From Saccostrea cucullata (taxonomy: Eukaryota): a stretch of DNA of 64,000 nt. Below are positions 29,753-46,182 of the stretch, piece after piece. The notes under the pieces were generated by a model, which was not told the origin of the DNA, searched no databases, and saw only the letters and a list, made by a program, of their open reading frames with translations. The translations under genes were made by a program, and so were the position numbers. Each line of letters begins with the position of its first letter. Positions within the stretch are counted from its first letter, which is position 1. Where the stretch lies: positions 248,001 through 312,000 of the forward strand of contig NW_026930753.1 in NCBI RefSeq assembly GCF_032062105.1, in the 5' to 3' direction.

Positions 29753-30796
29753 GCAGATAAAAAAAACCAATCTTTTCAGGATTGTACTTTTGTATGTAAT
29801 TTATTAAAAATCCATCAATGACATGTTTATTGTCATCCAATCAGAATATCACTATCAAAATGAAACATTTTATCTCATTTGGTTCAACAGCAACCCGATA
29901 TATAGAGTATCTAGGTCAATAACACACTGTATGGTGTCTGACAAATCCCTTTAAAGTCTACTTTGCAGTTATAAATGTGTTAAACACATGGCCTTCTGTT
30001 TCGCTCTAAACATATATAGTACCATTTCACATACTCAGTTATACAAGTTGCCTAAACATTTTCAAGTGATATTATTGAATTTATTGTAGTTAATGTCATC
30101 CTAATTTAGGAATTGGTCCCTTTGACCTAAACAATTGGAATGTTAGTGTGGGTAATAGTATTTTGTAATAATTAAAATTTCTTTGCAGGAAACGCTCGTC
30201 AGGACACAAGACTGAAAAACAGACGTACTGAAACACTGCCGTAAACACAGCCATCATTAAAGTCAACGGATTACCTAGGAACATCAAAGCAATATGACTG
30301 GCAATTTTTATCAATCAATGTGGCAGAAAAACATAAAAAAAAATATTTAAATGTTCAACTTCTTTGTTCATTGCCTTTTTTTCTTGATATATGAATATCA
30401 ATATATGAATATCGCAAAATATTTATGCGAATTTCGCACGATTTTTACATGAAAAAATGATAAATTGGAATTTGCGTAAATATCATGCGAAATTTCAGTC
30501 ACATGAAAATCGCACGAATGTCGCATGAATATTGTATGGGGACGTTCGCATGAAATTCGTATATGGAACTTTTCGCATGGTTTTTATATGATTTCCCCAC
30601 GGAATCCATGCGAAAAGGCAATCGCATGAAAATCATGTGACTCACTTTTCCCTGTGTACTATTGATGTTATAATATAGCACTGATTTATTGAAGGTAGAA
30701 TATTTTGTATGCTTCCTAATTACCCCTGCGTACAAAAAATAACGCACACTATGTAATGAAGCTTTTACAAAAGTCATCTCGTCTTATCCTTATGTT

Positions 30797-32146
30797 CTTT
30801 AGAAGGAGATTTTGAAAGAATATTTCTATGTAGTATATGTCAAGTCAAACGTTGCAATATTCGATCTTTTCCATTTGTATTGTAAAATTTTCCATTTGTA
30901 TTGTATGATATTTTGTGTATTGTATAATTTTCCATTTGTATTATAAAATTTTTTATTTGTATTGTATAATTTTTATGCATTGTATACTCAGTAATTTGCC
31001 ATTCGCATTCTATAATTTTCCATTTGTATTGAATAATTTTTCATTTGCATTATATAATTTATTTGCTTTTTTGCATTGTATAATTTTTCATTGACATTTT
31101 ATATTTTTCAATTGCATTGTATAATTTTTCATTTATATTGTAAAAAAAATCATTTGTATTGTACAATTTTTTTAATTTGTATTCTATATTTTCCATTTGT
31201 ATTGTATAATTTTTCATTTGCATTGTATCCGAGGGATTGTTTATATCTTTAGAAGGAGATTTTGAAAGAATATTTCTATGTAGTATATGTCAAGTCAAAC
31301 GTTGCAATATTCGATCTTTTCCATTTGTATTGTAAAATTTTCCATTTGTATTGTATGATAATTTGTGTATTGTATAATTTTCCATTTGTATTATAAAATT
31401 TTTTATTTGTATTGTATAATTTTTATGCATTGTATACTCAGTAATTTGCCATTCGCATTCTATAATTTTCCATTTGTATTGTATAATTTTTCATTTGCAT
31501 TATATAATTTATTTGCTTTTTTGCATTGTATAATTTTTCATTGACATTTTATATTTTTCAATTGCATTGTATAATTTTTCATTTATATTGTAAAAAAAAT
31601 CATTTGTATTGTACAATTTTTTTAATTTGTATTCTATATTTTCCATTTGTATTGTATAATTTTTCATTTGCATTGTATCCGAGGGATTGTTTATATCTTT
31701 AGAAGGAGATTTTGAAAGAATATTTCTATGTAGTATATGTCAAGTCAAACGTTGCAATATTCGATCTTTTCCATTTGTATTGTAAAATTTTCCATTTGTA
31801 TTGTATGATATTTTGTGTATTGTATAATTTTCCATTTGTATTATAAAATTTTTTATTTGTATTGTATAATTTTTATGCATTGTATACTCAGTAATTTGCC
31901 ATTCGCATTCTATAATTTTCCATTTGTATTGTATAATTTTTCATTTGCATTATATAATTTATTTGCTTTTTTGCATTGTATAATTTTTCATTGACATTTT
32001 ATATTTTTCAATTGCATTGTATAATTTTTCATTTATATTGTAAAAAAAATCATTTGTATTGTACAATTTTTTTAATTTGTATTCTATATTTTCCATTTGT
32101 ATTGTATAATTTTTCATTTGCATTGTATCCGAGGGATTGTTTATAT
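30797..32146. repeat. Three near-identical 450-bp tandem units built from ~21-bp AT-rich subrepeats
   Basis: AGAAGGAGATTTTGAAAG at 30801, 31251 and 31701; internal TTGTATAATTTTTCATTTGCA-like monomers. Confidence 0.95.
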
Positions 32147-33897
32147 TGGTTTGTAACGAAAGGATTTTATTGGACAGGTTTAATCTAATCATATATCTGA
32201 TTTCGTAATACCCGAGATTTTCCAGGAAGTTTACATGTGTTATCCAGTCTGAGAATTCAGTACAAGGCTCATTTTTTCGGAGAAAAAAGTAAGTTGAAAT
32301 AATGACCTGTAGGGATTTTAAAACAAAGTAAAAGCATTTAGTTTTAACAAGATATGCTCATATCATCTCACAACAAACCTATTTCGTAGTTTCAACTTTT
32401 CTGACCCAACGGTTCTTGAAAAGATGTATAGAAGATGTCATCTAATTTTTACTAAACCACTTCCATACACAAAAAGCATCATCCTTCATTTTAAGAAATT
32501 TAAATCCAGTTTATCAATGTATACCGGTACTTCTTGGCAAGTTAGGGCTAGCAGAGTAGTACTTGATAAAATGCTGAATATGCCAAAAGTTTACAGACGG
32601 ATGATAGATATAATGTAATGAGAAAAGCTGACTTTTCTACCATACACTTTATTTTTCACAACTGCCTGTATTTACATGTATGTTTGTATCAATATCTCTC
32701 CATCGGCCTTAGTTAATATAATTCTTTAACAAAATATTTCGACGATAAAATGTGCAAATGTGTAAATGTACATTTTGTCGTCCATTCCGCAAGAGGACAA
32801 AAATGGCTCATCAAAGGGCCATATTGTCGGCAGTGACAATAGGTATATATGCACGAGAGGAAGAATATACATGTATATATACTGTACTTTTTCCTTACCT
32901 GATATTGGACTTTTCCAAATTCTGTATTCACCCATTCTATCAAACTTTTCTGAAAAAACAAAAAAAAAATAAAGTTAATGATGTCAATAAGTCTTGAATG
33001 TCTTTTATCAGAATCGAAAATATTCCGTACCATTTTTTTTATTCCTAAAAAGTTTAAGTCAAAGAGTATAAAAATTGGCCTGATATTAAAATAGGACAAT
33101 TTTGCATCTGGATATATCTACAGACTTTTTATTTTTTTCAAACAAACTTTTTTTTCAATATCTCTTACACATTTTCTGTAAGAGGTATTCAAAATAGCAT
33201 ACGTATATGGATGAATTTCGTACGATTTACGGAACGTCATACTGACGATTTGCTGGCGGGGGGGGGGCTGTTAAATGTTTAAAGCACTTCATATTATGAT
33301 AAAACACTTTATATAAATATAACGGGTGTTGTACAAAATATAATGACATACATATATCTACAATATATAATGAAAGATGATCTGACAGGTGTATAATGGA
33401 AGTTGCTCAATATATACTTTAAAAACTACTTCATATAATTAAAATAGTACAACATATAATGAAGAAAACTCTGCATATAATGTTTATTCCTCATATAATA
33501 CAGCCCCGGTCTTCCATACACATTCTCCAATTATGAAGTTGTCCATACACGTTAACAAATTGTGACAAAAAGGGGGGTATAAGACCTCTAAAGAGGTTTC
33601 GCGTGATATTTTACGCATGGACTTGTGAAAAATTTTTTTTCTCAAAGTTATCATACTCATGTTTTAGCCAAATGTTATCACGATCATCAAAGTTTTCAAA
33701 GGAAATAAAAAAATAGATTTATTTTAAATAATCTATATAGTGCGTCTATTGATTTTTATCTAGGGATAAAAAATTTATTTTTCCCTGGCATTATTCTGCT
33801 TTTCAAAATATTCAACCATTTTCGACACTTGTGTATTTTCGAACAATACCTATACTTCTTTGAACGAATATTTCCGAGAGCAGCATTAGCAAACTTC

Positions 33898-34384
33898 TGA
33901 AGCAAAAACTGTAATCGAGATCATATTATCCTTTCATTTCTCGGTAGTCGCACTGACTTCCGGTTTCTTGTTTCCTTTAGGTTCTCTGCAGGTCATGTGA
34001 CCTGTTGTAGGTATAAATAAGGAGACAATCGGTTGTTTTAGTTAGTCTGTTGCTGACAGCCGAATTGGAAAGACGGTTGTATACAGAGAAGTCAAACGTG
34101 GTAGGTACTGCAAGGAATACCTTGAATCAAGTCTTATGTGTCTGAAATAGACTTTCGAGACTTTGATTGATTATATATTATTTAGATAAAGTACCTGATA
34201 TTCTGGTTTGACTGAAGGTAAGAAACAGACGCGCTTCAGTCCTTGGAAGGCGCGTGCGCTCCCGAGAAACGGAGGAATAATTGTACATACTATTAATTTA
34301 AATTTGTGATTGAGAAAATTGATTTATTCTTTAATTGTTCAGATAGAACAGCCGAATCCCATAAAAGAACCCGAAAACGTTACA
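33898..34384 (+). repeat. 5' LTR of Gypsy B
   Basis: TGAAGC...CGTTACA, direct repeat of 45696-46182, TATAAATA at 34013. Confidence 0.95.
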
Positions 34385-34390
34385 TAATTT

Positions 34391-34413
34391 TGGTGGCAGC
34401 GCGGTGGGATTCG
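34391..34413 (+). promoter_or_regulatory. Primer binding site (tRNA-Leu) of Gypsy B
   Basis: TGGTGGCAGCGCGGTGGGATTCG matches the tRNA-Leu 3' complement with a 2-nt insertion; same TAATTT spacer as element A. Confidence 0.85.
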
Positions 34414-34483
34414 GCAGATAATCAAAGTAAATAATATAAGTTTTAAATTAAAAAATTTTTGTGTTATATTTGCCTTGTAAATC

Positions 34484-35759
34484 ATGAGTGCGATGGAGGA
34501 AATGATCAACGAAGAGATATCCTTTCTTGAAAAGAGTTGTGAGGGATTGCGTCTTGAAATAGAACAGCAATCTACACCCGTTGAAACAACTCGACCAATG
34601 CGCGATTCTGGAATTGCATCATTGACTGGTGAACGCGCACAAGAAAATCAGCCTGGAAGAGCGCTAGATGGGGTGACAATAAGGAGAAAAACAGCTCAAC
34701 GAAATTTCACTGCAGAACCAAATGCACCCAGTTCGACAAGGGATTATGCTGCGAGTGCTCAACAATATGAAACGATGGTGCCACAGCCAAACTGGAAAAC
34801 GCCGAACATTTTGTCAAGTGCACATCCACACCCAGTTCATATGTTGAGTGAGACTCTGGCGCATTCTCCTTTTCAAGTTCAATTGGAAATGACATCGCAA
34901 GGAGAGTATCAAAAAAGGCCTCCTGTGCAAACGAAAGATGCAGAATTATTTCATGAGGGTCAGGTACAAAACAAGTTTGAGACTCTAAGATCTTCATTAA
35001 ATGCGCAGTTTTCAGAAACTGCTTTAGAACATAATGCACAGCTACCGATTCAAATGAAGTGTACATCCGCGAATGCGCTGCAGCATATATCAGCAGATGC
35101 GCTGCATCAAACACCTGTGGATGCGCTTCATCAGATACCCGCGAATGCGCAGAGTCGATATGGAAATTCCGGAAATGAGGTAAACTAAGGGATAGATAGC
35201 TCATTTCCCCGACAGATAGTCAACGTTGCTGATAAAGAGAACAAGGACCAAAGTGAGAAAGCTACAGCCAAGTGTAACATTAAGCCAGCAACCTTTGATG
35301 GAACTCATTCTTGGCTGGATTATAAATCCCATTTTGATGCGTGTACGGCTATTAATAATTGGAATTCTAAGGAAAAGGGGTTGTATTTAGCAGTGTCACT
35401 GCGAGGAGCTGCACAAGGAATATTAGGAAATGTTTCGCCAGAAACGGGACAACAATATGACCATTTAGTGAAAGCGCTTGAAGAAAGATTTGCTCCACCT
35501 AATCAAACGGGGTTGTACCGTGCACAACTCAAAGAAAGGCGTCAACGGGCATCAGAAACATTATCTGAGCTAGGCCAAGCTGTGTGCCGATTGACGTATT
35601 TGGCATATCCATCTGCACCGGCAGAAGTAAGAGAAACTCTTGGTAAAGAGGCTTTTATTGATGGATTGATAGATTCTGATATGAGACTACGCATTAAACA
35701 GAGTCGACCTCAGAATCTAAATGAAGCTATTCGCCTGGCAATAGAACTTGACGCCTACT
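34484..35759 (+). pseudogene. gag: Gypsy B gag, 5' part
   Basis: ATG 34484, in-frame stop at 35186, then IKPATFDG..YLAVSLRG..ERFAPPNQT..RLRIKQSRP..AIELDAY, homologous to element A gag. Cut by the LINE insertion. Confidence 0.9.
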
Positions 35760-36045
35760 CGGATGAGTCACGTGACACGGAACAGGGTGGACGCTTTATC
35801 TGTTCTTGTGTTTTTTTTTTGACATTTTTTGCCAAAATCTCTATTTCTACACACTTAAAATCTGTTGGAAGTGGCGTAGGATAGTTTTTGGCCTGTGTAT
35901 ATATGTTCATTGGATTTGGATTGGATATTATATTCGTTTTTTGTGAATTTTTTGTGTGTGTGAATTATCTGATACCTTGGTGAACACTCTTCACCCCTTG
36001 ATCGCTTGTATTACTTGTATTGCACAGCGAGGTTTAAACTCCGTC

Positions 36046-37386
36046 ATGGGTGATCGGACAGAGGAACGTACGATCAAACCGCTATATTTAAAAGACTCAG
36101 AAATTCAATGCTCGGATGATGGCAGAATAACAGACTTCGACTTAATGGACTGTATCACGAAAGTGGTTGGAAATTCCTTGCATTGTCTACAACTTGACCG
36201 GAATTTGTGGAGAGTTTACCTCAGTGATAATGCCAGTAGAGAAAAACTTCTAACAGAGGGAATACATATTCAAAACATTTCTATTTCTTTCTTTGACACA
36301 AATCCTTACTCGTCAGGTAACCATAGTACCACAGAGAAAACTTTGAAAATCAGATTATGTGGCCTTCCCCTATCTGTAGACGATTCAGCTGTTCATGAAT
36401 TACTGGAAAAACTTGAAGTCAAGCCTAAAAGTAATATTCTATACGAGAAAATTCGCCACCCGGTTACAAATAGGATGACTAGTGTACTAAACGGGAATCG
36501 GTTTATTTACATTGAGCCTTTACCCGAAGAAAAGTATCTTCCCAGGATCAACTACTGTGCGGGCCTGCGCTGTCAGATTTTCCATTACGGTCAGCCTAAA
36601 TCCCAGAGGAAACTCACATGTACTAAATGCTGGGCGACAGATCATACCAGGAGGTACTGTAATAACGCCCCACGTTGTAAAGTGTGTAAACAGGAAGGGC
36701 ACCAGCCAGGGGATGAAAAGTGCGCGTATTATCAAGTCCAAGAAAACGTTATTGCCTTTAACGGAGAAGACAACGTGCTTTCTAATTTTTTCCCTTGTGA
36801 ATTAAATATTTATGGAATAACGCATAAATCTGCGGAACACGCCTTCCAATACACAAAGGCCGTTAGATGTGGCGATCTCGAGTCAGCCAAACTGGTTCAG
36901 GAGGCCAGAGATGCCCTATCAGCCAAACGGTATGGCGACAAGGTCAAACCCAACGAGCAATGGTTTGAGACCAGGGAAACAGCCATGACCGAAATAATCG
37001 AAAATAAATGTGTACAAGTCCCAATGTTTCGGGAAAAATTAAGATCGGTTAAGAAGGACATTATATTCGCCGAATCAACCTACAATGACATATGGGGCAC
37101 TGGTTTGGATAAAAAAGGTACGGAGAACACCAAAATTGATTCCTGGCCTGGAAAAAACCTTCTTGGCAAAATTATCAGTAAAATCGGCAAAAAAATACGG
37201 AAACGAAAAAAAAGTGACCAGTGGAGCAAACCAAAACAGAAACAAAAACCGAAAGTTAACACCAAACAGCGAGACATTGCACAGATGTTACATGCTTTAA
37301 GGAATCAATCGGATTCTGAATCCATGTCAGGTTTTGATGAATCATCGGACTCTGATTCAGACGACCCGGCTAAGAAGGACAAATAA
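36046..37386 (+). CDS. LINE ORF1p: Tx1-like RNA-binding region, two zinc knuckles, NADAR (YbiA/DUF1768-like) domain, basic/acidic tail; 446 aa
   Basis: First ATG at 36046, uninterrupted frame. Knuckles CTKCWATDHTRRYC and CKVCKQEGHQPGDEKC. NADAR motifs in order: LSNF, SAEHAFQYTK, AKRYG, W..M..K..Q, AESTYNDIWGTG, GKNLLG (~36748-37200). Confidence 0.9.
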   Translation: MGDRTEERTIKPLYLKDSEIQCSDDGRITDFDLMDCITKVVGNSLHCLQLDRNLWRVYLSDNASREKLLTEGIHIQNISISFFDTNPYSSGNHSTTEKTLKIRLCGLPLSVDDSAVHELLEKLEVKPKSNILYEKIRHPVTNRMTSVLNGNRFIYIEPLPEEKYLPRINYCAGLRCQIFHYGQPKSQRKLTCTKCWATDHTRRYCNNAPRCKVCKQEGHQPGDEKCAYYQVQENVIAFNGEDNVLSNFFPCELNIYGITHKSAEHAFQYTKAVRCGDLESAKLVQEARDALSAKRYGDKVKPNEQWFETRETAMTEIIENKCVQVPMFREKLRSVKKDIIFAESTYNDIWGTGLDKKGTENTKIDSWPGKNLLGKIISKIGKKIRKRKKSDQWSKPKQKQKPKVNTKQRDIAQMLHALRNQSDSESMSGFDESSDSDSDDPAKKDK

Positions 37387-37504
37387 ATCAAAAACTGTGT
37401 AATGCTCGAACGTCGCAGGACTTTGATTCTCGATCAGCGGACTGGAATGAAAAGTTACGGTATTTTTTTCTATAACAAATATATGCATTTGAATATTAAT
37501 TCTT

Positions 37505-40500
37505 ATGGAAAAATTAGAATTTATCTCAGTTAATGTAAGGGGTTTAAATACCCCCGAAAAAAGACGAAAAATTTTTACATGGTTGAAAGAATGTAATATA
37601 GATATCATTCTGTTGCAAGAAACACATTTTTTAGAAAAAAATGAATCTGTATATAATTTAAACTGGAGAGGAAAAACATTTCACGCATATAGCGACTCTG
37701 CATTCAGTAGAGGCGTGTCTGTTCTGTTTAACGCAAAAATAGATGTTAACATAATAAATGTCAAAAAGTCTATTGATGGTAGGAAAATTCTGATAAATCT
37801 TGAAATCGAGGGTAATATTCTTACAATAGTAAATATATATGCACCTAATGAAATTAAAAAGAGGTGTGAATTTTTCAAAAAAACTTAAGAACTTTATTTC
37901 AAAAAATTGTGTCAACGAAAATATTATACTATGTGGAGACTTTAATTGCCAGATAAACAATATTAATAATGTAGATAAAAGTGCAAATTATTTAAAAGAT
38001 TTGATAAGGCATTATAACATGGATGATATATGGAAAAAACAAAATCCAGGTATGTCAGGTTTCACTTGGTGTGATGCAAAAAATGATCCTAAAAGTCGAA
38101 TAGATTATGTTTTTATAAATGATTCTTTTTATTATAGCATAGCAGATATCAAGGTTAGAAAAATTCCAGGCACTCATTCAAACGGGAGTCGAATGAGTGA
38201 CCATAGATACTTAAAATTTAGTTTTGATATCGATAAAACGAAAAAAGGTCCCGGATATTGGAAACTTAACGTTTCCTATCTCGACAATGAAAAATATAAA
38301 AAAGGTATCTTAGACATTATTCATAGTATAAATTCCTCTTTAAGCCCTATTTTGACATGGGAGTTAATTAAACGAAAGGTTAAAGATTTCTCGATTTATT
38401 TTGCAAAAAATGAACAAAAATCAATTAAACAAAAGATAAGAACACTAGAACGCGAAATAGAAGATATGGAGAAAGGAAACGTAGAAAATTTTAATTACAA
38501 AAGACTGAAAACTTTAGAAGCGGAACTTGACGCTATTTATGACAAAAAATCTAAAGGTGCGCAGATAAGGTCTAAAATTAAATGGATAGAGGAGGGGGAG
38601 AAAAATTCAAAATTCTTTTTAAATTTAGAAAAACGCAATCAATCATCAAACGTAATTAAAGAAATAAAAACAAGAGAAGGAAATAAAATCAGTAAAACTA
38701 ATGCCATTTTAGGTGAAATGTATTCTTTTTATAGCGAACTATATACTAGTAAAGAAATTTAAAACGAAAAAATAGAAAAATATTTATCTGAGATAGACGA
38801 TATCCCTAAATTAAGTGAAGAAGATAAGATATTGTTAGAAAAATTTCCAACATATGAAGAGTGCAAGGAAGCTGTTGATAGCATGAAAAAAGAAAAATCA
38901 CCTGGACTAGATGGCCTTCCTAGTGAATTTTATCAATGTTTTTGGGAAACACTTGGGCCTTTCTTTTATAAAGCACTTAATGATATTTTTGATAAAGGTG
39001 AATTGTCTTACACACAGAAACTTTCTATTATATCACTGATCCACAAAAAGGGTGAAAAAGATAATTTAAAAAACTATAGACCGATAAGCTTAACAAATAC
39101 AGATTATAAAATTATTGCCTTTGTCTTTGCAAAGAGATTACAAAATATACTATATAAGTTGATTAACGAAAATCAAACGGCTTACATAAAAGGGAGATAT
39201 ATCGGTGAAAATGCTAGATTAGTACTTGACGTTTTTGAATACTGTGAAAGTGAAAATTCAGATGGTATATTACTTTTCTTAGACTTTGAAAAAGCATTTG
39301 ACTCGGTTGAATGGAACTTTCTTTTCCAAGTCTTACAAAAATTTAATATTGGCAATAGTTTTATAAAGTGGGCAAAAATTTTATATACAAATCCAATGTT
39401 TAAAATGAAAAACAACGGCTGGCTTTCTAAAACAAGCGAAATGACGCGAGGAATTAGGCAAGGCTGTCCTATTTCCGCTCTCTTGTACCTATTCGTCGCA
39501 GAAATTTTGGCTATTAAAATAAAATGTGATACTGATATAAAAGGCATTACAATTAATAATTATGAAATCAAAAACATCCAACATGCAGACGATTTGACTG
39601 TAGCTTTAAAAGACGAAATATCAATGAAGCGAACTCTGGATAAATTACAAGAATTCTGTGAACATGCGGGTTCAAAAGTAAACATGCATAAGACAGAATG
39701 CATTTTATTAGGGGAACTAAGAAATTTATATGATGAACTCTACGGTATAAAAATTAAGAATAAAGCAGTAAGATGTTTGGGAATATTCATAGGGCATGAT
39801 AAGGAAGAATGTTACAATAAAAACTGGATGAAAATTTATCACGATATTGAAAAACTTTTTGAATCTTGGAAAAGAAGAAAACTAACGCTATTTGGTAAAT
39901 CATGTATAGTTAAGACACTTGCTATATCTAAACTTACATACGTTGCCTCAATACTAAGTCTTCCTGATAATGCTTACATTAAAAAAATACAACGTCTAAT
40001 TTATAACTTCATTTGGGATAAAAATGAACGAATTAAAAGAAACACGCTTATAGGTAGAATTTTAAAAGGTGGACTCTCAATCGTTGATATTGAATGTAAA
40101 TTAAAAGCCTTAAAAGCAGCTTGGGTACCTAGATTGTTAAAAAGCAAAGGTATTTTGTACAAAATTTTTGATGGTTATTGTAAAAAATCAAATTTTGAAG
40201 TTCTCTATGTGTTAGATTTTTCTGATAGAAAAGTAGAAAATATGGAAAAATTAGAGAAACTACCTAAATTTTATCAACAAATGTTATGTTGCTTTAATGA
40301 ATGTAAGCCCTGTTTTTTGAACAAAATGTCTTCCGATAATGTTCTTCGACAGCCGATATGGAACAATTGTAACTTTGTTTATAGGGGAAATACATTATTT
40401 TTTAAAAACTGGATAGCCAGTGGGATTTTGCATGTTAAAGACTTATTTGACGATGATGGTAATTTTAAATCATTGTTAGATTTTTCTAATTGTTGTGTGA

Positions 40501-41210
40501 ATTTAAAATTCTTTCTTCTGTTTTCAAACCTTTGCTACTAAAGTATGATTTTTCAAATTGTAAGTTTGTTAACATAAGATACAAAAATTATTTTCTTTTC
40601 TACACAGGACAGGTTAATATCATAGATCAAAGATGTAACTTTTTTTATGACAATCTTGTACACAGAAAATTTTGTAAACCATGTTATCAAATAGTTTTAA
40701 GCAACGAATTCAGTCGAACCTTCAGAATGGAAAAATATATATCAATGTAAATTATATGACATACCCGATAAACAACTTACAGAATTCAACTATAAACTTT
40801 TAAACAATATTCTTTGTAATAACTTGTATCTCAGTAAATGGAAAAAAGAAACGAGTAGTAATTGCAAATTATGCCACGTGAATGAAACTTCAAAACATCT
40901 CATTTTTGAATGTAAAAATGTTGGTGAAATTTGGAATAGATTAAGTTTGTACCTGAAAATAGATATCAAATGGAAACATGTAATAATTGGATTTAGCTCT
41001 GAGCGCAATAGAAAAATTGTATCACTCAACACACTCATCTCATATGTTGCCTGTAGGATTTACAAATATAAGATGTACTGTCGAATACATTCCTTAGATG
41101 AAACTAGTTATAACATCTTTAATCACGTTAAATCTTCAATTTTTTTCTATGCTTCCATTCTAAAAAATTTGAAATCACTTGACTACAAACTTTTTAAAAA
41201 TTTTGCATAA
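37505..41210 (+). pseudogene. LINE ORF2p: APE endonuclease, reverse transcriptase, C-terminal zinc finger (disrupted)
   Basis: APE motifs NVRGL, LQETH, NIYAPN, GDFN, SRIDY, SDH, GPGYWKLN; RT motifs SPGLDG, NYRPISL, LDFEKAFD, GIRQGCP, QHADD; CKLC..HLIFEC. Frameshift in the A run near 37880, stop at 38760, frameshifts near 40490 and 40730. Confidence 0.93.
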
Positions 41211-41341
41211 AATTGTCTGAAGGTAATATTGTCATATTGTTTGTAATGTAATTTGTCTGTTATATATATATTTCACTGTTTGTTTGTATGAAGAATTTAA
41301 AATAAATAAATTAAAAAAAAAAAAAAAACTTGACGCCTACT

Positions 41342-44300
41342 ATAAGACCGAGAAAAGAAGTCATATGCGCGAAACTGAAAGTCAGGGACAAGCACGAGCT
41401 CAAGCTTCCGAGTCTGGAGATTTAAAAGCGCTGATGCAGAAAATGCAGAATAAAATAGATAATCTGGAGAGGCAGATTAAGGCAAATGCAAGATTCAGCA
41501 GAGATTCTTTTCAGAAGGAAGGCAAGCGGAACAGGGTAAAATGTTACTACTGCTCAGAGGAAGGACACATTCGGAAGAATTGCCCAAAGTTGAAGAACAA
41601 AGCTCAAGACAAAGAAAAGGATATGCGGCGACATGAATCAAAGTCAGATGGCGGAAGCGCATTTCAAGTGCGCAGTAGACGTAAAAGAAAGAGAAAATGT
41701 AAAAGCAATGGCAATGTTGGCGCAAACAATTTGTGCGAGGAAGCAGGTATCTTCATTCAGGGAAATGTGAATGGGAGCAGTGCAAAACTCTTGATTGACA
41801 CTGGAGCATCCCTTACTTTTATTTCATAGAGATTGTTTGATACATTGCAGGAGGAAAAACCTGTGCACAAGGAGAACGCACAACGAATATTCAATGCTAG
41901 TGGTTCTGTTCTGTCCCAGTATGGTAAAGCAACATTTTCTCTCAAGATTGGTGAGTCAGATAGATTTATTGATGCAGTTGTTGCAGATATTTCTGTGGAC
42001 GGAATTATTGGACTTGATTTTCTCAAGAAATACAATGGGCTGAAAGATCTTCAAGAGAGTTTGCTGCGATTGAATTATGAGACATGCCCATTTTCCTGGG
42101 AAGGCACACTAGGTTGTTACAGAGTCACTGCAGCCAGTGATATTTGCATACCACCGAGGAGTGAAATAATTATTTCTGCCAATGTTACGGGAAATAATAA
42201 CTATGGAGGAGCGGATTACTTAGTGGAACCAGAACGAAAATTTATTGAGAAAGGGCGTGCGCTAGTAGGACGCACTCTCGTTAAAGGTAGCGATAAGATA
42301 CCAGTTTGCTAAATGAATGTCACTAATGATATGCAACAGATTTTTCGAGGAACTCTGATTGGGAAAATGACAGCTGTTGAGGAGAGACCAAAATCCCCAT
42401 TTTATCCTCAGGGTTTAACCAAAGAGCTAAGAGGTGATCTGAAAGATTTGTTAGACAGATGTAAAGGAAATCTATTTTCAGAGCAAGTGACAAAAGTTGA
42501 GAACTTCCTACGAAAAAATCAGTTTTTGTTCGCAACTTCTAATTATGACTTAGACCAGTGTGGTGCGCCACAAGATAAACATGGAGCAGGCTAAACAACC
42601 TATCAAGCAAGGTCCTAGGCGAATTCCGATTCATCTAACTTATGAGGTAGATGCACAGGTTAAGGAAATGCTCGAGAAGGATGTAATAGAACCTTCAACC
42701 TGGGCATCGCCAGTAGTTCTTGTACGCAAGAAAGACGGCACAATGCGCTTTTGTGTAGACTACCGTCGATTAAATGAGGTGACCACAAAGGACGCTTATC
42801 CTCTTCCAAAAATTGATGAGGCTTTTGACCACTTATCAGGACACAAGATGTTTTCTACGCTTGATCTGAACAGTAGTTACTGGCAGGTTAGTATGGAGGA
42901 GAGCGACAAGCCGAAGACTGCATTTGTGACACGACAAGGTTTATTCCAATTCAAGGTTATGCCCTTTGGCTTATGCTGAGCGTCTGCAACGTTTGAGAGA
43001 CTTATGGAAACCGTTCTTGCAGGACTCCAATGGGATAAGTGTTTAGTATACCTTGATGACATTATTGGTGTAGGCAAATCATTTGATGATATGCTTGAAA
43101 ACCTGCAACATGTTTTTCAGAGATTGCATCAGGCTGGCTTAAAGTTAAAGGCCAAGAAATGCAATTTTTTTGCTAGCAAGGTATCCTATCTGGGACACAT
43201 CATTTCCAAAGACAGAATTGCAACCGACCCAGAGAAAGTGAAAGCAGTAGCTGAGTGGCCAATTCCAAATACTGTGACAGAGTTAAGATCTTTCCTAGGT
43301 CTTTGTAGTTATTACCGGCGCTTTATAAAGAATTTTGCATCAGTTGCCAAACCATTGCATCGACTCACAGAAAAGGGAAGGAAGTTTCTGTGGGGTAAAA
43401 AAGCCCAAGAAGCATTCGAAGTGCTGCGCAACAAACTGATAACTGCGCCAGTATAAGCTCTACCAGATGTAACGAAGCCATTCATTCTGGATACCGACGC
43501 TAGCAACGAAGCGATCGGTGCGGTATTATCTCAAAATATTGATGGTAAAGAACGTGTTATAGCATATGCTAGCCGTACATTGTCCAAGTCAGAGAGGAAA
43601 TATTGTGTGACCCGGAAAGAACTTTTGGCCATTGTCCATTTTATTAAGCATTACCGCCACTACCTTTATGGTAAACAGTTTCTTATTAGAACGGACCATG
43701 GGTCTTTGAGATGGCTTTTAAGATTCAAAAACCCAGAGGGTCAGTTGGCAAGGTGGTTGGAAGTGATCAGTACCTATGATATGAAAATAGAACACAGACC
43801 CGGTAAAAAGCATGGTTATGCGGACGCGCTGAGCAGAATAACTTGCGCTCAGTGTGGGTTTGATGCTTCATCATTGGAAAATGCTGAGTATGATATGAAA
43901 GTTGAACCAGCTGTACGAACTTTACAGTCATCGGATATAAAAAGTGAAGAGATGGATTATAGTCTGCAAGAGGCTCAGGAGCAGTGTAGAGACATTAAGC
44001 TTGTAAAAACATGGGTCGAGAAAGGTAAGCGACCAAGTTTCAGCGATATGTCTATGCATGGCTACGTAGTGAAGTCTTTGTGGAATCAGTTTTCTAGACT
44101 TGCAATAGAGAATGGATTGCTCATGCGCAAGTGGACTCTGCTTCGTCCCAACAAAGAAGTTCATCAAGCTATCATACCAGACCAAGAGCGCAGACGCGTC
44201 TTGGAAATGTGTCATGATAACCAGACGTCAGGACACTTGGGGGTGAACAAAACGATAGCTTAGATACGACAGAGATATTACTGGCCTGGATTTCAAAAAG

Positions 44301-45441
44301 ACGTCTACCAGTATGTTACAGGTTGTGACAAGTGTACGAGACGTAAAAATCCAAACCCTAAACATAGGGCCCCAATGCAGATTACCGGATCAGGTATGCC
44401 AATGGAAAGAATTGCCACAGATATACTGTGTGAGCTACCTTAGACTGATAGAGGAAATCGCCACATTTTAGTTGTGTAAGACTATTTCACCAAGTGGACA
44501 GAGGCATTCGCTCTGCCAAATATGGAAGCTGAGACGATTGGACGCACTATGGTAGAACAGGTATTTGTCAGATTTGGTATCCCCTTTACCATTCATTCGG
44601 ACCAAGGTCAACAATATTAGAGCAAGCTCTTTCAAGAGATGTGTCGGTTACTTGGGATTAAAAAGACCCGTACAACACCCTATCACCCGAAGTCAGACCG
44701 ACGGTGGAGCGCTTTAACCGCACATTGTTCTCTATGTTAAGCACTTACGTTCAGGAAAATCAACGTGACTGGGATTTGCATCTTCCGTATATACTTATGG
44801 CATATCGTTCTACAGAACATACCACCACTAATTTCTCGCCAAACATGCTTATGTTGGGACGAGAAGCAACTACCCCATTAGAGTTGATGTATGAAATGCC
44901 TCCAGGTATTAAGGATATTCCAACAAGTCAATGGGTTTTGGTGTTGCGTGAACGATTAGAGTCAGCTCATAAGTTGGTCAGAGAAAACATTCAAGGTGAA
45001 ATGCAGCGCCAGAAAAGGTACCATGATACCAAACTAGCATGGTCATCCTTTAGTCCCGGAGAAAGAGTTTATGTATTTTTCTATACCAGAAAGAGCGGCT
45101 GTTCTCCGAAGTTAATATCATTTTGGAGAGGGCCTTTCTTAATTGAAGACAAATTGTCAAATGTTTTATATGAGGTTGCATGCGGAACAAAATGCAAAAG
45201 CACTATCATCCACTGTGATCGCTTGCGGAAGTGTAAGTCACAGATACTTCAAAGAGAGAATGATATCAGTAATTTCTCGAGTCAAAACAATGCAGATGAT
45301 ACTCAAGAGTGTCTTGTAGAAGAAAATGAAGATCAGTATGATGTTAGGGAAAACCCAAGCAGTTGTGCTTCAGATAGGCTAAGGCGCATTAGAAATGCAC
45401 CTGCGTGGCATGACGACTTCATTGTTGAATACAAATTATAA
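41342..45441 (+). pseudogene. pol: Gypsy B gag 3' part and pol (disrupted)
   Basis: CCHC CYYCSEEGHIRKNC, protease LIDTGA, RT WASPVVLVRKKDG..YLDD, RNase H, integrase HSDQG/ERFNRT, FWRGPF module. Many stops and frameshifts (e.g. 41827, 42310, 42977, 43454, 44261). Confidence 0.93.
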
Positions 45442-45695
45442 GCTCTCAGGACAACTATAGATTAGTGTAGACCATGAGGAAGAACTCTGGTTTTAGTGGT
45501 TAAAACTGTAGCTATGGCACAATAACATTGTAAATTTAAGCAGAGAGCTTAGTATCTTTCAAATCTTTATGGGATATGCACATAGTCAGGAAGACTATTG
45601 CATGGTATAAATAATAATGAACATATGTAAAATTGTACGCCTTTAGTTTTTCTTTATTTAGGAATGCGAGACGCATTTCCTGGAGGCGTGAGAAG

Positions 45696-46182
45696 TGAAG
45701 CAAAAACTGTAATCGAGATCATATTATCCTTTCATTTCTCGGTAGTCGCACTGACTTCCGATTTCTTGTTTCCTTTAGGTTCATTGCAGGTCATGTGACC
45801 TGTTGTAGGTATAAATACGGAGACAATCGGTTGTTTTAGTTAGTCTGTTGTTGACAGCCGAATTGGAAAGACGGTTGTATACAGAGAAGTCAAACGTGGT
45901 AGGTACTGCAAGGAATACCTTGAATCAAGTCCTATGTGTCTGAAATAGACTTTCGAGACTTTGATTGATTATATATTATTTAGATAAAGTACCTGATATT
46001 CTGGTTTGACTGAAGGTAAGAAGCGGACGCGCTTCAGTCCTTGGAAGGCGCGTGCGCTCCAGAGAAACGAAGGAATAATTGTACATACTATTAATTTAAA
46101 TTTGTGATTGAGAAAATTGATTTATTCTTTAATTGTTCAGATAGAACAGCCGAATCCCATAAAAGAACCCGAAAACGTTACA
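45696..46182 (+). repeat. 3' LTR of Gypsy B
   Basis: Direct repeat of 33898-34384, preceded by purine-rich GGAGGCGTGAGAAG. Confidence 0.95.

Follow-up and report, generated by a model that had tools for sequence, protein, structure and literature searches.

Why would the first open reading frame (ORF) of a retrotransposon contain a NADAR domain, and what might the element gain from it? This question is raised by a long interspersed nuclear element (LINE) of the L1/Tx1 type in the oyster Saccostrea cucullata, which lies full length on the forward strand of the window, as we call the whole 64,000-nucleotide stretch analysed here (RefSeq assembly GCF_032062105.1, contig NW_026930753.1, positions 248,001 to 312,000; coordinates below count from its first letter). 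The domain is conserved cargo of the element with a predicted catalytic site, and the reading we prefer, at a probability of about 0.5, is that a NADAR tethered to the element's ribonucleoprotein hydrolyses base-linked ADP-ribose (on guanine N2 or on cytidine) from the element's own nucleic acid.

An added NADAR domain in a type I ORF1

The domain was identified by both profile and structure. ORF1 residues 241-385 match Pfam PF08719 over profile positions 9-163 of 163 (E 1.5e-22; 81 bits, 81-84.5, against a gathering score of 35.1), and the domain as modelled by AlphaFold (pLDDT 97.6) has the YbiA fold, with five core helices and small sheets. Compared with the NADAR of Phytophthora nicotianae (8BAU), the model gave a Foldseek E of 1.3e-8 and a TM of 0.85, and a VIA Z of 18.6 with a root-mean-square deviation of 2.3 over 155 aligned residues; Escherichia coli YbiA (2B3W) gave Z 15.8, and besides these two no structure scored above Z 3. 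In a comparison separate from that search, DarG1, the DarT1-associated antitoxin (8BAT), matched weakly (Z 7.6). The initial annotation, made from the letters alone, had seen a NADAR in frame after two zinc knuckles and had paired its motifs with those of YbiA; both observations are borne out, the pairings being visible in the HMMER alignment of ORF1 to 2B3W and the likeness extending to the predicted structure.

Within the NADARs, the domain has a Glu (E343) in the last strand, where DarG1 has an Asp marker and the orphan NADARs of phages a His, and neither the DarG1 (BC4488 family) Asp and N-terminal extension nor any ADP-ribosyltransferase gene, DarT included, was found in the element. Because of the Glu marker and the weak match to DarG1, the domain is placed, by sequence and model, with the YbiA-type NADARs.

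In the AlphaFold model of ORF1 residues 1-390, a pair of RRM folds is followed by the two knuckles and the NADAR. The RRM region (pLDDT 94) has many RRM matches at Z 7-8, along with weak feature matches to ZCCHC3-like and zf-CCHC clusters; the knuckle residues C205, C211, C214, H219 and C226 are nearly invariant, and the C-terminal tail evolves faster between subfamilies. Type I LINE ORF1s likewise have two RRMs immediately before their CCHC knuckles (PMC4120745), whereas the accessible part of that paper lists no C-terminal NADAR for any ORF1. As modelled, the protein is a type I ORF1 plus one added domain.

This type of fusion is already on record (PMC12477816, Genome Biol 2025, Repbase families), contrary to the suggestion in the initial annotation that it was uncharacterised. 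A YbiA-family NADAR was described in the ORF1 of several Crassostrea gigas Tx1 families, where its role was called unclear and RNA processing was suggested (PMC12477816). These families share the fusion type and the host group with the window element, and the C. gigas ORF1-NADARs P0018 and P0063 are 57-68% identical to the window ORF1, but they belong to another oyster species. That report treats the fusion in a single sentence plus an alignment in its supplement; its accessible text contains neither an analysis of selection nor a residue audit and gives no function, and our literature search found no functional study of a LINE ORF1-NADAR fusion.

The catalytic triad is retained and the pyrophosphate pocket is remodelled

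Active-site residues were mapped in 8BAU numbering, following PMC11543638, where E43, K50 and E125 are mechanistically important in NADARs. Their equivalents in ORF1 are E264 (36835), K271 (36856) and E343 (37072); among close homologs the three positions are conserved in 88/89, 85/90 and 74/85 sequences, and the whole triad is intact in 73 of 92 divergent ORF1 NADARs, so that active-site conservation across families holds. The equivalents of K75, G78, W89, R93 and W133 are likewise present, as they are in 8BAU and 2B3W, and the window copy keeps W306, R310 and W350. The differences from these two structures, to which the LINE domain is 23-26% identical, are its attachment to an RNA-binding ORF1, an E125-W133 loop one residue shorter, and the loss of R79, the pyrophosphate-binding Arg of the GR motif, which is Asp298 in the window copy. 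That position is Arg in 7/7 prokaryotic references and in only 10/92 LINE NADARs, whose members have Lys, Asn, Arg or Asp. The D130 position is Asn with a neighbouring Asp, and of the pyrophosphate set R79/W89/R93/D130/W133 the window copy keeps W89, R93 and W133 only. Judged from its residues, the NADAR is likely to be enzymatically active; a shifted substrate or weaker ADP-ribose binding may accompany the altered pocket.

Two other accounts of the domain turn on these residues. The NADAR could be a non-catalytic RNA-binding or oligomerisation module that has kept the fold only, which would suit the net basic character of the domain, the very basic stretch that comes after it, and the replacement of a triad residue (K50 by M or Q, for example) in some 20% of the divergent members. 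We regard this as very unlikely, given that the acidic catalytic residues and the W/G pocket motifs are near-invariant even at 30-35% identity. It could instead cleave the N-glycosidic bond of guanine nucleotides that are damaged or ring-opened, cleaning the RNA template or the nucleotide pool: YbiA cleaves reactive riboflavin intermediates (PMC11543638). The YbiA-type Glu is present in the LINE domain, and the loss of one pyrophosphate-binding Arg suits a smaller, ribosyl-phosphate substrate. The riboflavin intermediates chemically resemble ring-opened GMP; riboflavin synthesis is, however, absent in animals. Our literature search found no such activity on nucleic acids, and a damaged-guanine substrate appears highly improbable.

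The domain is abundant and under purifying selection

In the S. cucullata genome the ORF1 matches number at least 95 (43-100% identity), most of them spanning the NADAR, and the matches to NADAR at least 151; homologs of the fused ORF1 were found in Pinctada imbricata, Crassostrea/Magallana gigas and many marine assemblies. Chance, or capture by a single copy, is ruled out by these counts and by the homologs in other bivalves. The domain lies in the ORF1 frame, inside the target-site duplications (TSDs) and across many families, as expected of element cargo, which is how the initial annotation had described it.

By simple Nei-Gojobori counts on three subfamily pairs, dN/dS of the NADAR was 0.055 (window against L002), 0.12 and 0.08, and its dN between subfamilies (0.19-0.31) was similar to that of the RRM core and no faster. 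The NADAR is under purifying selection. These ratios also rule out a decayed pseudo-domain.

The window copy itself is full length yet non-autonomous: the description of it as a complete element holds for its length, its 15-bp TSD, its poly(A) and its open ORF1, but not for ORF2, which lies in four pieces (frameshift at ~37877, stop at 38760-38762, gaps at ~40491 and ~40712). A sister copy (L031), 89% identical in nucleotides, has both ORFs open, and its 1247-residue ORF2 finds L1 ORF2p as its best PDB match (300 bits, against 56 to R2). Contigs from four RNA or presumed-RNA runs align along the LINE, many at 95-99% or more, and do not have the ORF2 lesions of the window copy; they show no strand and leave DNA carry-over possible.

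One RNA contig fits the LINE from 35767 onward, and at 35767-35776, in the 5′ untranslated region (UTR), lies a palindrome that is perfect over 10 bp and has the E-box CACGTG at its core. Whole or mostly so, this palindrome opens all 7 of the 7 sibling 5′ ends examined, after 7-8 variable bases, and the full-length copies that share this start are the window element, L031-L035, L041 and L049. The palindrome is a likely candidate for an internal promoter element, with transcription starting just upstream.

Spread across architectures and element classes

ORF1-NADARs at only ~30-35% identity still stand upstream of ORF2s with APE endonuclease and reverse transcriptase (RT). Distances in the RRM core and in the NADAR correlate (rho 0.71), which fits one old ORF1-NADAR association. 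The initial annotation had asked whether the domain always travels with the ORF2 of the window element. The ORF2 behind P0226 is not L1-like, matching L1 ORF2p at 71 bits in the RT core only, and the NADAR is therefore carried by two or more deep lineages of LINEs. At L053:224-5643 a NADAR-ORF1 with a weakly related RRM core stands upstream of a non-L1 ORF2 whose APE begins at residue 233.

Nested in this diversity is a related ORF1 family of ~10 copies, upstream of an APE gene, in which an acidic low-complexity tail replaces the NADAR (P0286, P0287 in L056, P0290); by sequence, the domain has been lost there. Since this family does without it, the NADAR is accessory and dispensable, and it looks like cargo that has been used repeatedly. 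This result bears on the RNA-processing hypothesis of PMC12477816, by which the NADAR would do housekeeping on the RNA intermediate (end or cap processing, or remodelling of the ribonucleoprotein) unrelated to any host attack. Nematode SNA-3 NADARs do work in trans-splicing, and a giant-virus cap methyltransferase is fused to a NADAR. Given that the related family, and most LINEs, transpose with no NADAR, and that NADARs are inactive on RNA ADP-ribosylated at phosphate ends or at the 2′-OH, we consider housekeeping unlikely.

Related NADARs also occur in ORF1-like proteins of other domain orders, namely PHD-esterase-NADAR-knuckles, PHD-NADAR-esterase and coiled-coil/L1-RBD-NADAR. Among them P0227, P0230 (L059), P0177, P0190 and P0198 join a NADAR to PHD and/or GDSL esterase domains and knuckles in two orders, and in L059 the ORF that comes after the ORF1-like NADAR protein encodes an APE preceded by a long N-terminal extension. 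An Atlas cluster of esterase/NADAR/knuckle proteins has 52 members, most commonly from Annelida; in the oyster genome no PHD-esterase-NADAR ORF1 was found, the NADAR part alone being matched. New here are the NADAR in esterase-type ORF1s, its presence in a non-L1 LINE lineage, and its loss in one related family.

In a tree of NADARs, whose deep nodes are weakly supported and whose match set is biased to the query, the transposon-type NADARs are separated from the prokaryotic references in one group of 145 rows (SH-aLRT 94, not starred), a grouping that is suggestive only. A recent bacterial or phage donor is unsupported, the best phage or plasmid matches reaching at most 36% and grouping apart. 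The NADAR-TatD DNase fusions P0156 and P0206 (L063) group with the transposon-type NADARs, as does P0172 (L060), a 1502-residue protein whose NADAR is C-terminal and which lies next to another NADAR ORF. The gene models P0089 and P0090, which join ORF1 pieces to CARD or tyrosine-phosphatase domains, are probably mis-annotated insertions.

The domain is also found in other RNA-based parasites: it occurs in Ectocarpus Gypsy Pol (PMC12477816), and the oyster nidovirus PONV1 and other animal RNA viruses carry it. There, as in the invertebrate RNA-virus NADAR/Macro proteins, it likewise sits inside a replication or coat polyprotein, but the element class and the position of the fusion differ from those of LINE ORF1, and the nearest matches of the Ectocarpus domains are mostly bacterial, whereas those of the LINE domain are other animal transposon-type NADARs.

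At two loci of the oyster genome, NADAR ORFs were further found in divergent orientation to matches of MULE transposases, at a distance of ~200 bp (G000:C10955:92689-93440) and of ~5 kb (G000:C18254:118369-123834). Long NADAR ORFs of 546-908 residues (C5976, C12507, C14337, C18254) are not among the listed ORF1 matches. DNA transposases work without an RNA intermediate, and their association with the domain is one reason to consider that the NADAR acts on soluble derivatives of ADP-ribose (immune signals or by-products of RNA repair), by binding or destroying them, or reads ADP-ribosylated partners. Such a role has been proposed for many viral NADARs and would agree with a remodelled phosphate pocket, but attachment to an RNA coat of RRMs and knuckles speaks for a nucleic acid as the substrate, all three catalytic residues are retained, and macromolecular marks have been argued to be the target of eukaryotic RNA-virus NADARs. 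On balance we hold such a role to be unlikely.

A possible eraser of base ADP-ribosylation

We infer that the NADAR is active, what it acts on, that the host has a writer, and that the domain serves in counter-defence; the mechanism would run as follows. ORF1p would coat element RNA through its two RRMs and two knuckles, and that same RNA would be the first target of the NADAR, which, if active, would strip ADP-ribose from guanine N2, and possibly from cytidine, on element nucleic acid. A base adduct would presumably block both translation and reverse transcription, and RNA that had been cleaned would stay translatable and RT-copyable in hosts with ADP-ribosyltransferases of the CARP-1/pierisin type, which modify bases. 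All four NADAR families remove ADP-ribose from guanine in DNA and RNA in vitro, and Glu-type NADARs also remove it from cytidine, which makes the guanine-specific framing of the initial annotation too narrow. For the NADARs of invertebrate RNA viruses a function in countering ADP-ribosylation by the host has been argued, and CARP-1 homologues have been reported mainly in bivalves. With DarG1 and the phage orphan NADARs the LINE domain may share a logic in which guanine ADP-ribosylation is reversed by the parasite or the toxin's partner.

Several observations weigh against removal of base-linked ADP-ribose. The pyrophosphate clamp is remodelled, R79 being mostly lost and the R93 position variable, and the subfamily dN/dS comparison showed no evidence that the NADAR evolves rapidly and adaptively. 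No guanine-N2 writer was found in the genome with the PF22596 and PF01375 profiles, a search whose controls were silent too, or through a search of the literature. PARP matches are numerous in the genome, yet the guanine-N1 mark made by PARP15 is not a substrate of NADAR. In vitro activity of a NADAR is no predictor of protection in vivo. Neither YbiA nor the T4 NADAR rescues E. coli from DarT1 (PMC11125620). The MULE-adjacent NADARs count against the reading if the role is tied to target-primed reverse transcription.

A wider proposal, which we put forward tentatively and think doubtful, is that base ADP-ribosylation of the CARP-1 type is an unrecognised transposon defence of marine invertebrates, countered by a single widespread clade of NADAR erasers that has moved between L1/Tx1 elements, other LINEs and DNA transposons. 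A CARP-1-type writer facing a transposon NADAR would have its bacterial parallel in DarT1 facing a phage NADAR. Two open questions are touched by this: on what substrate animal NADARs act physiologically, and what purpose guanine ADP-ribosyltransferases such as CARP-1 serve in bivalves. Because it is conserved, tethered and part of an abundant LINE family, the NADAR makes it possible to test directly whether animal transposons are restricted by base ADP-ribosylation. With the fusion already on record, the value of the finding lies in that test and in the wider spread of the domain, not in the window copy.

The LINE copy and its surroundings

The features of the locus are collected in Table 1. 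The element has the hallmarks of the L1 group: an ORF1 and an ORF2 with N-terminal APE, RT and a C-terminal zinc motif, a poly(A), and a TSD of ~15 bp. Assignment to Tx1 is provisional and is made from the knuckle-type ORF1 and PMC12477816. The first two A of the 15-bp TSD may derive from the poly(A), leaving 13 unambiguous bases, for which the chance of a match at the given boundaries is ~5e-6.

Table 1. Positions in the window of the LINE, its parts and the retrotransposon that hosts it
Feature	Position	Strand	Remarks
Gypsy-like long terminal repeat (LTR) retrotransposon hosting the LINE	33898..46182	+	LTRs, 4-bp TSD; gag split by the LINE
LINE, L1/Tx1-type	35760..41326	+	full length
Left TSD	35745..35759	+	15 bp, exact match to 41327-41341
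5′ UTR	35760..36045	+	7 variable bases, then the 10-bp palindrome
ORF1, open	36046..37386	+	ATG 36046 to TAA 37386, 446 aa; RRM-RRM-CCHC-CCHC-NADAR-basic/acidic tail
Two RRM-fold domains	36067..36591	+	aa ~8-90 and ~97-182; AlphaFold 2 model
Two zinc knuckles	36619..36723	+	CX2CX4HX4C, CX2CX4HX6C (aa 192-226); sequence
NADAR/YbiA-type domain	36739..37209	+	aa 232-388; Pfam, Foldseek, structure comparison
Lys/Arg-rich stretch, then acidic Ser/Asp tail	37210..37383	+	charge counts
ORF2	37505..41210	+	APE endonuclease, RT, C-terminal zinc motif; in four pieces in the window copy
3′ UTR	41211..41326	+	AATAAA 41301-41306, poly(A) 41313-41326
Right TSD	41327..41341	+	exact match to 35745-35759

The LTRs of the surrounding Gypsy-like element (33898-34384 and 45696-46182) are 487 bp long and 97.9% identical, which, if this identity is taken as a guide to age, suggests that the LINE insertion is recent. 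The best explanation of the locus is a young copy of a large invertebrate L1/Tx1-type family. A sequence-specific target is typical of many Tx1 families, though not universal. The window insertion and those of its siblings share no target sequence, having unrelated flanks and TSDs of 15-16 bp with an A-rich start. Specificity for Gypsy gag is ruled out by these mutually unrelated sites, and the Gypsy target is therefore incidental. The Gypsy-like element has a primer-binding-like stretch after its 5′ LTR and a fragmented gag-pol, and elsewhere in the window (~30796-32150) three near-identical 450-bp tandem units are made of an AT-rich repeat of ~21 bp.

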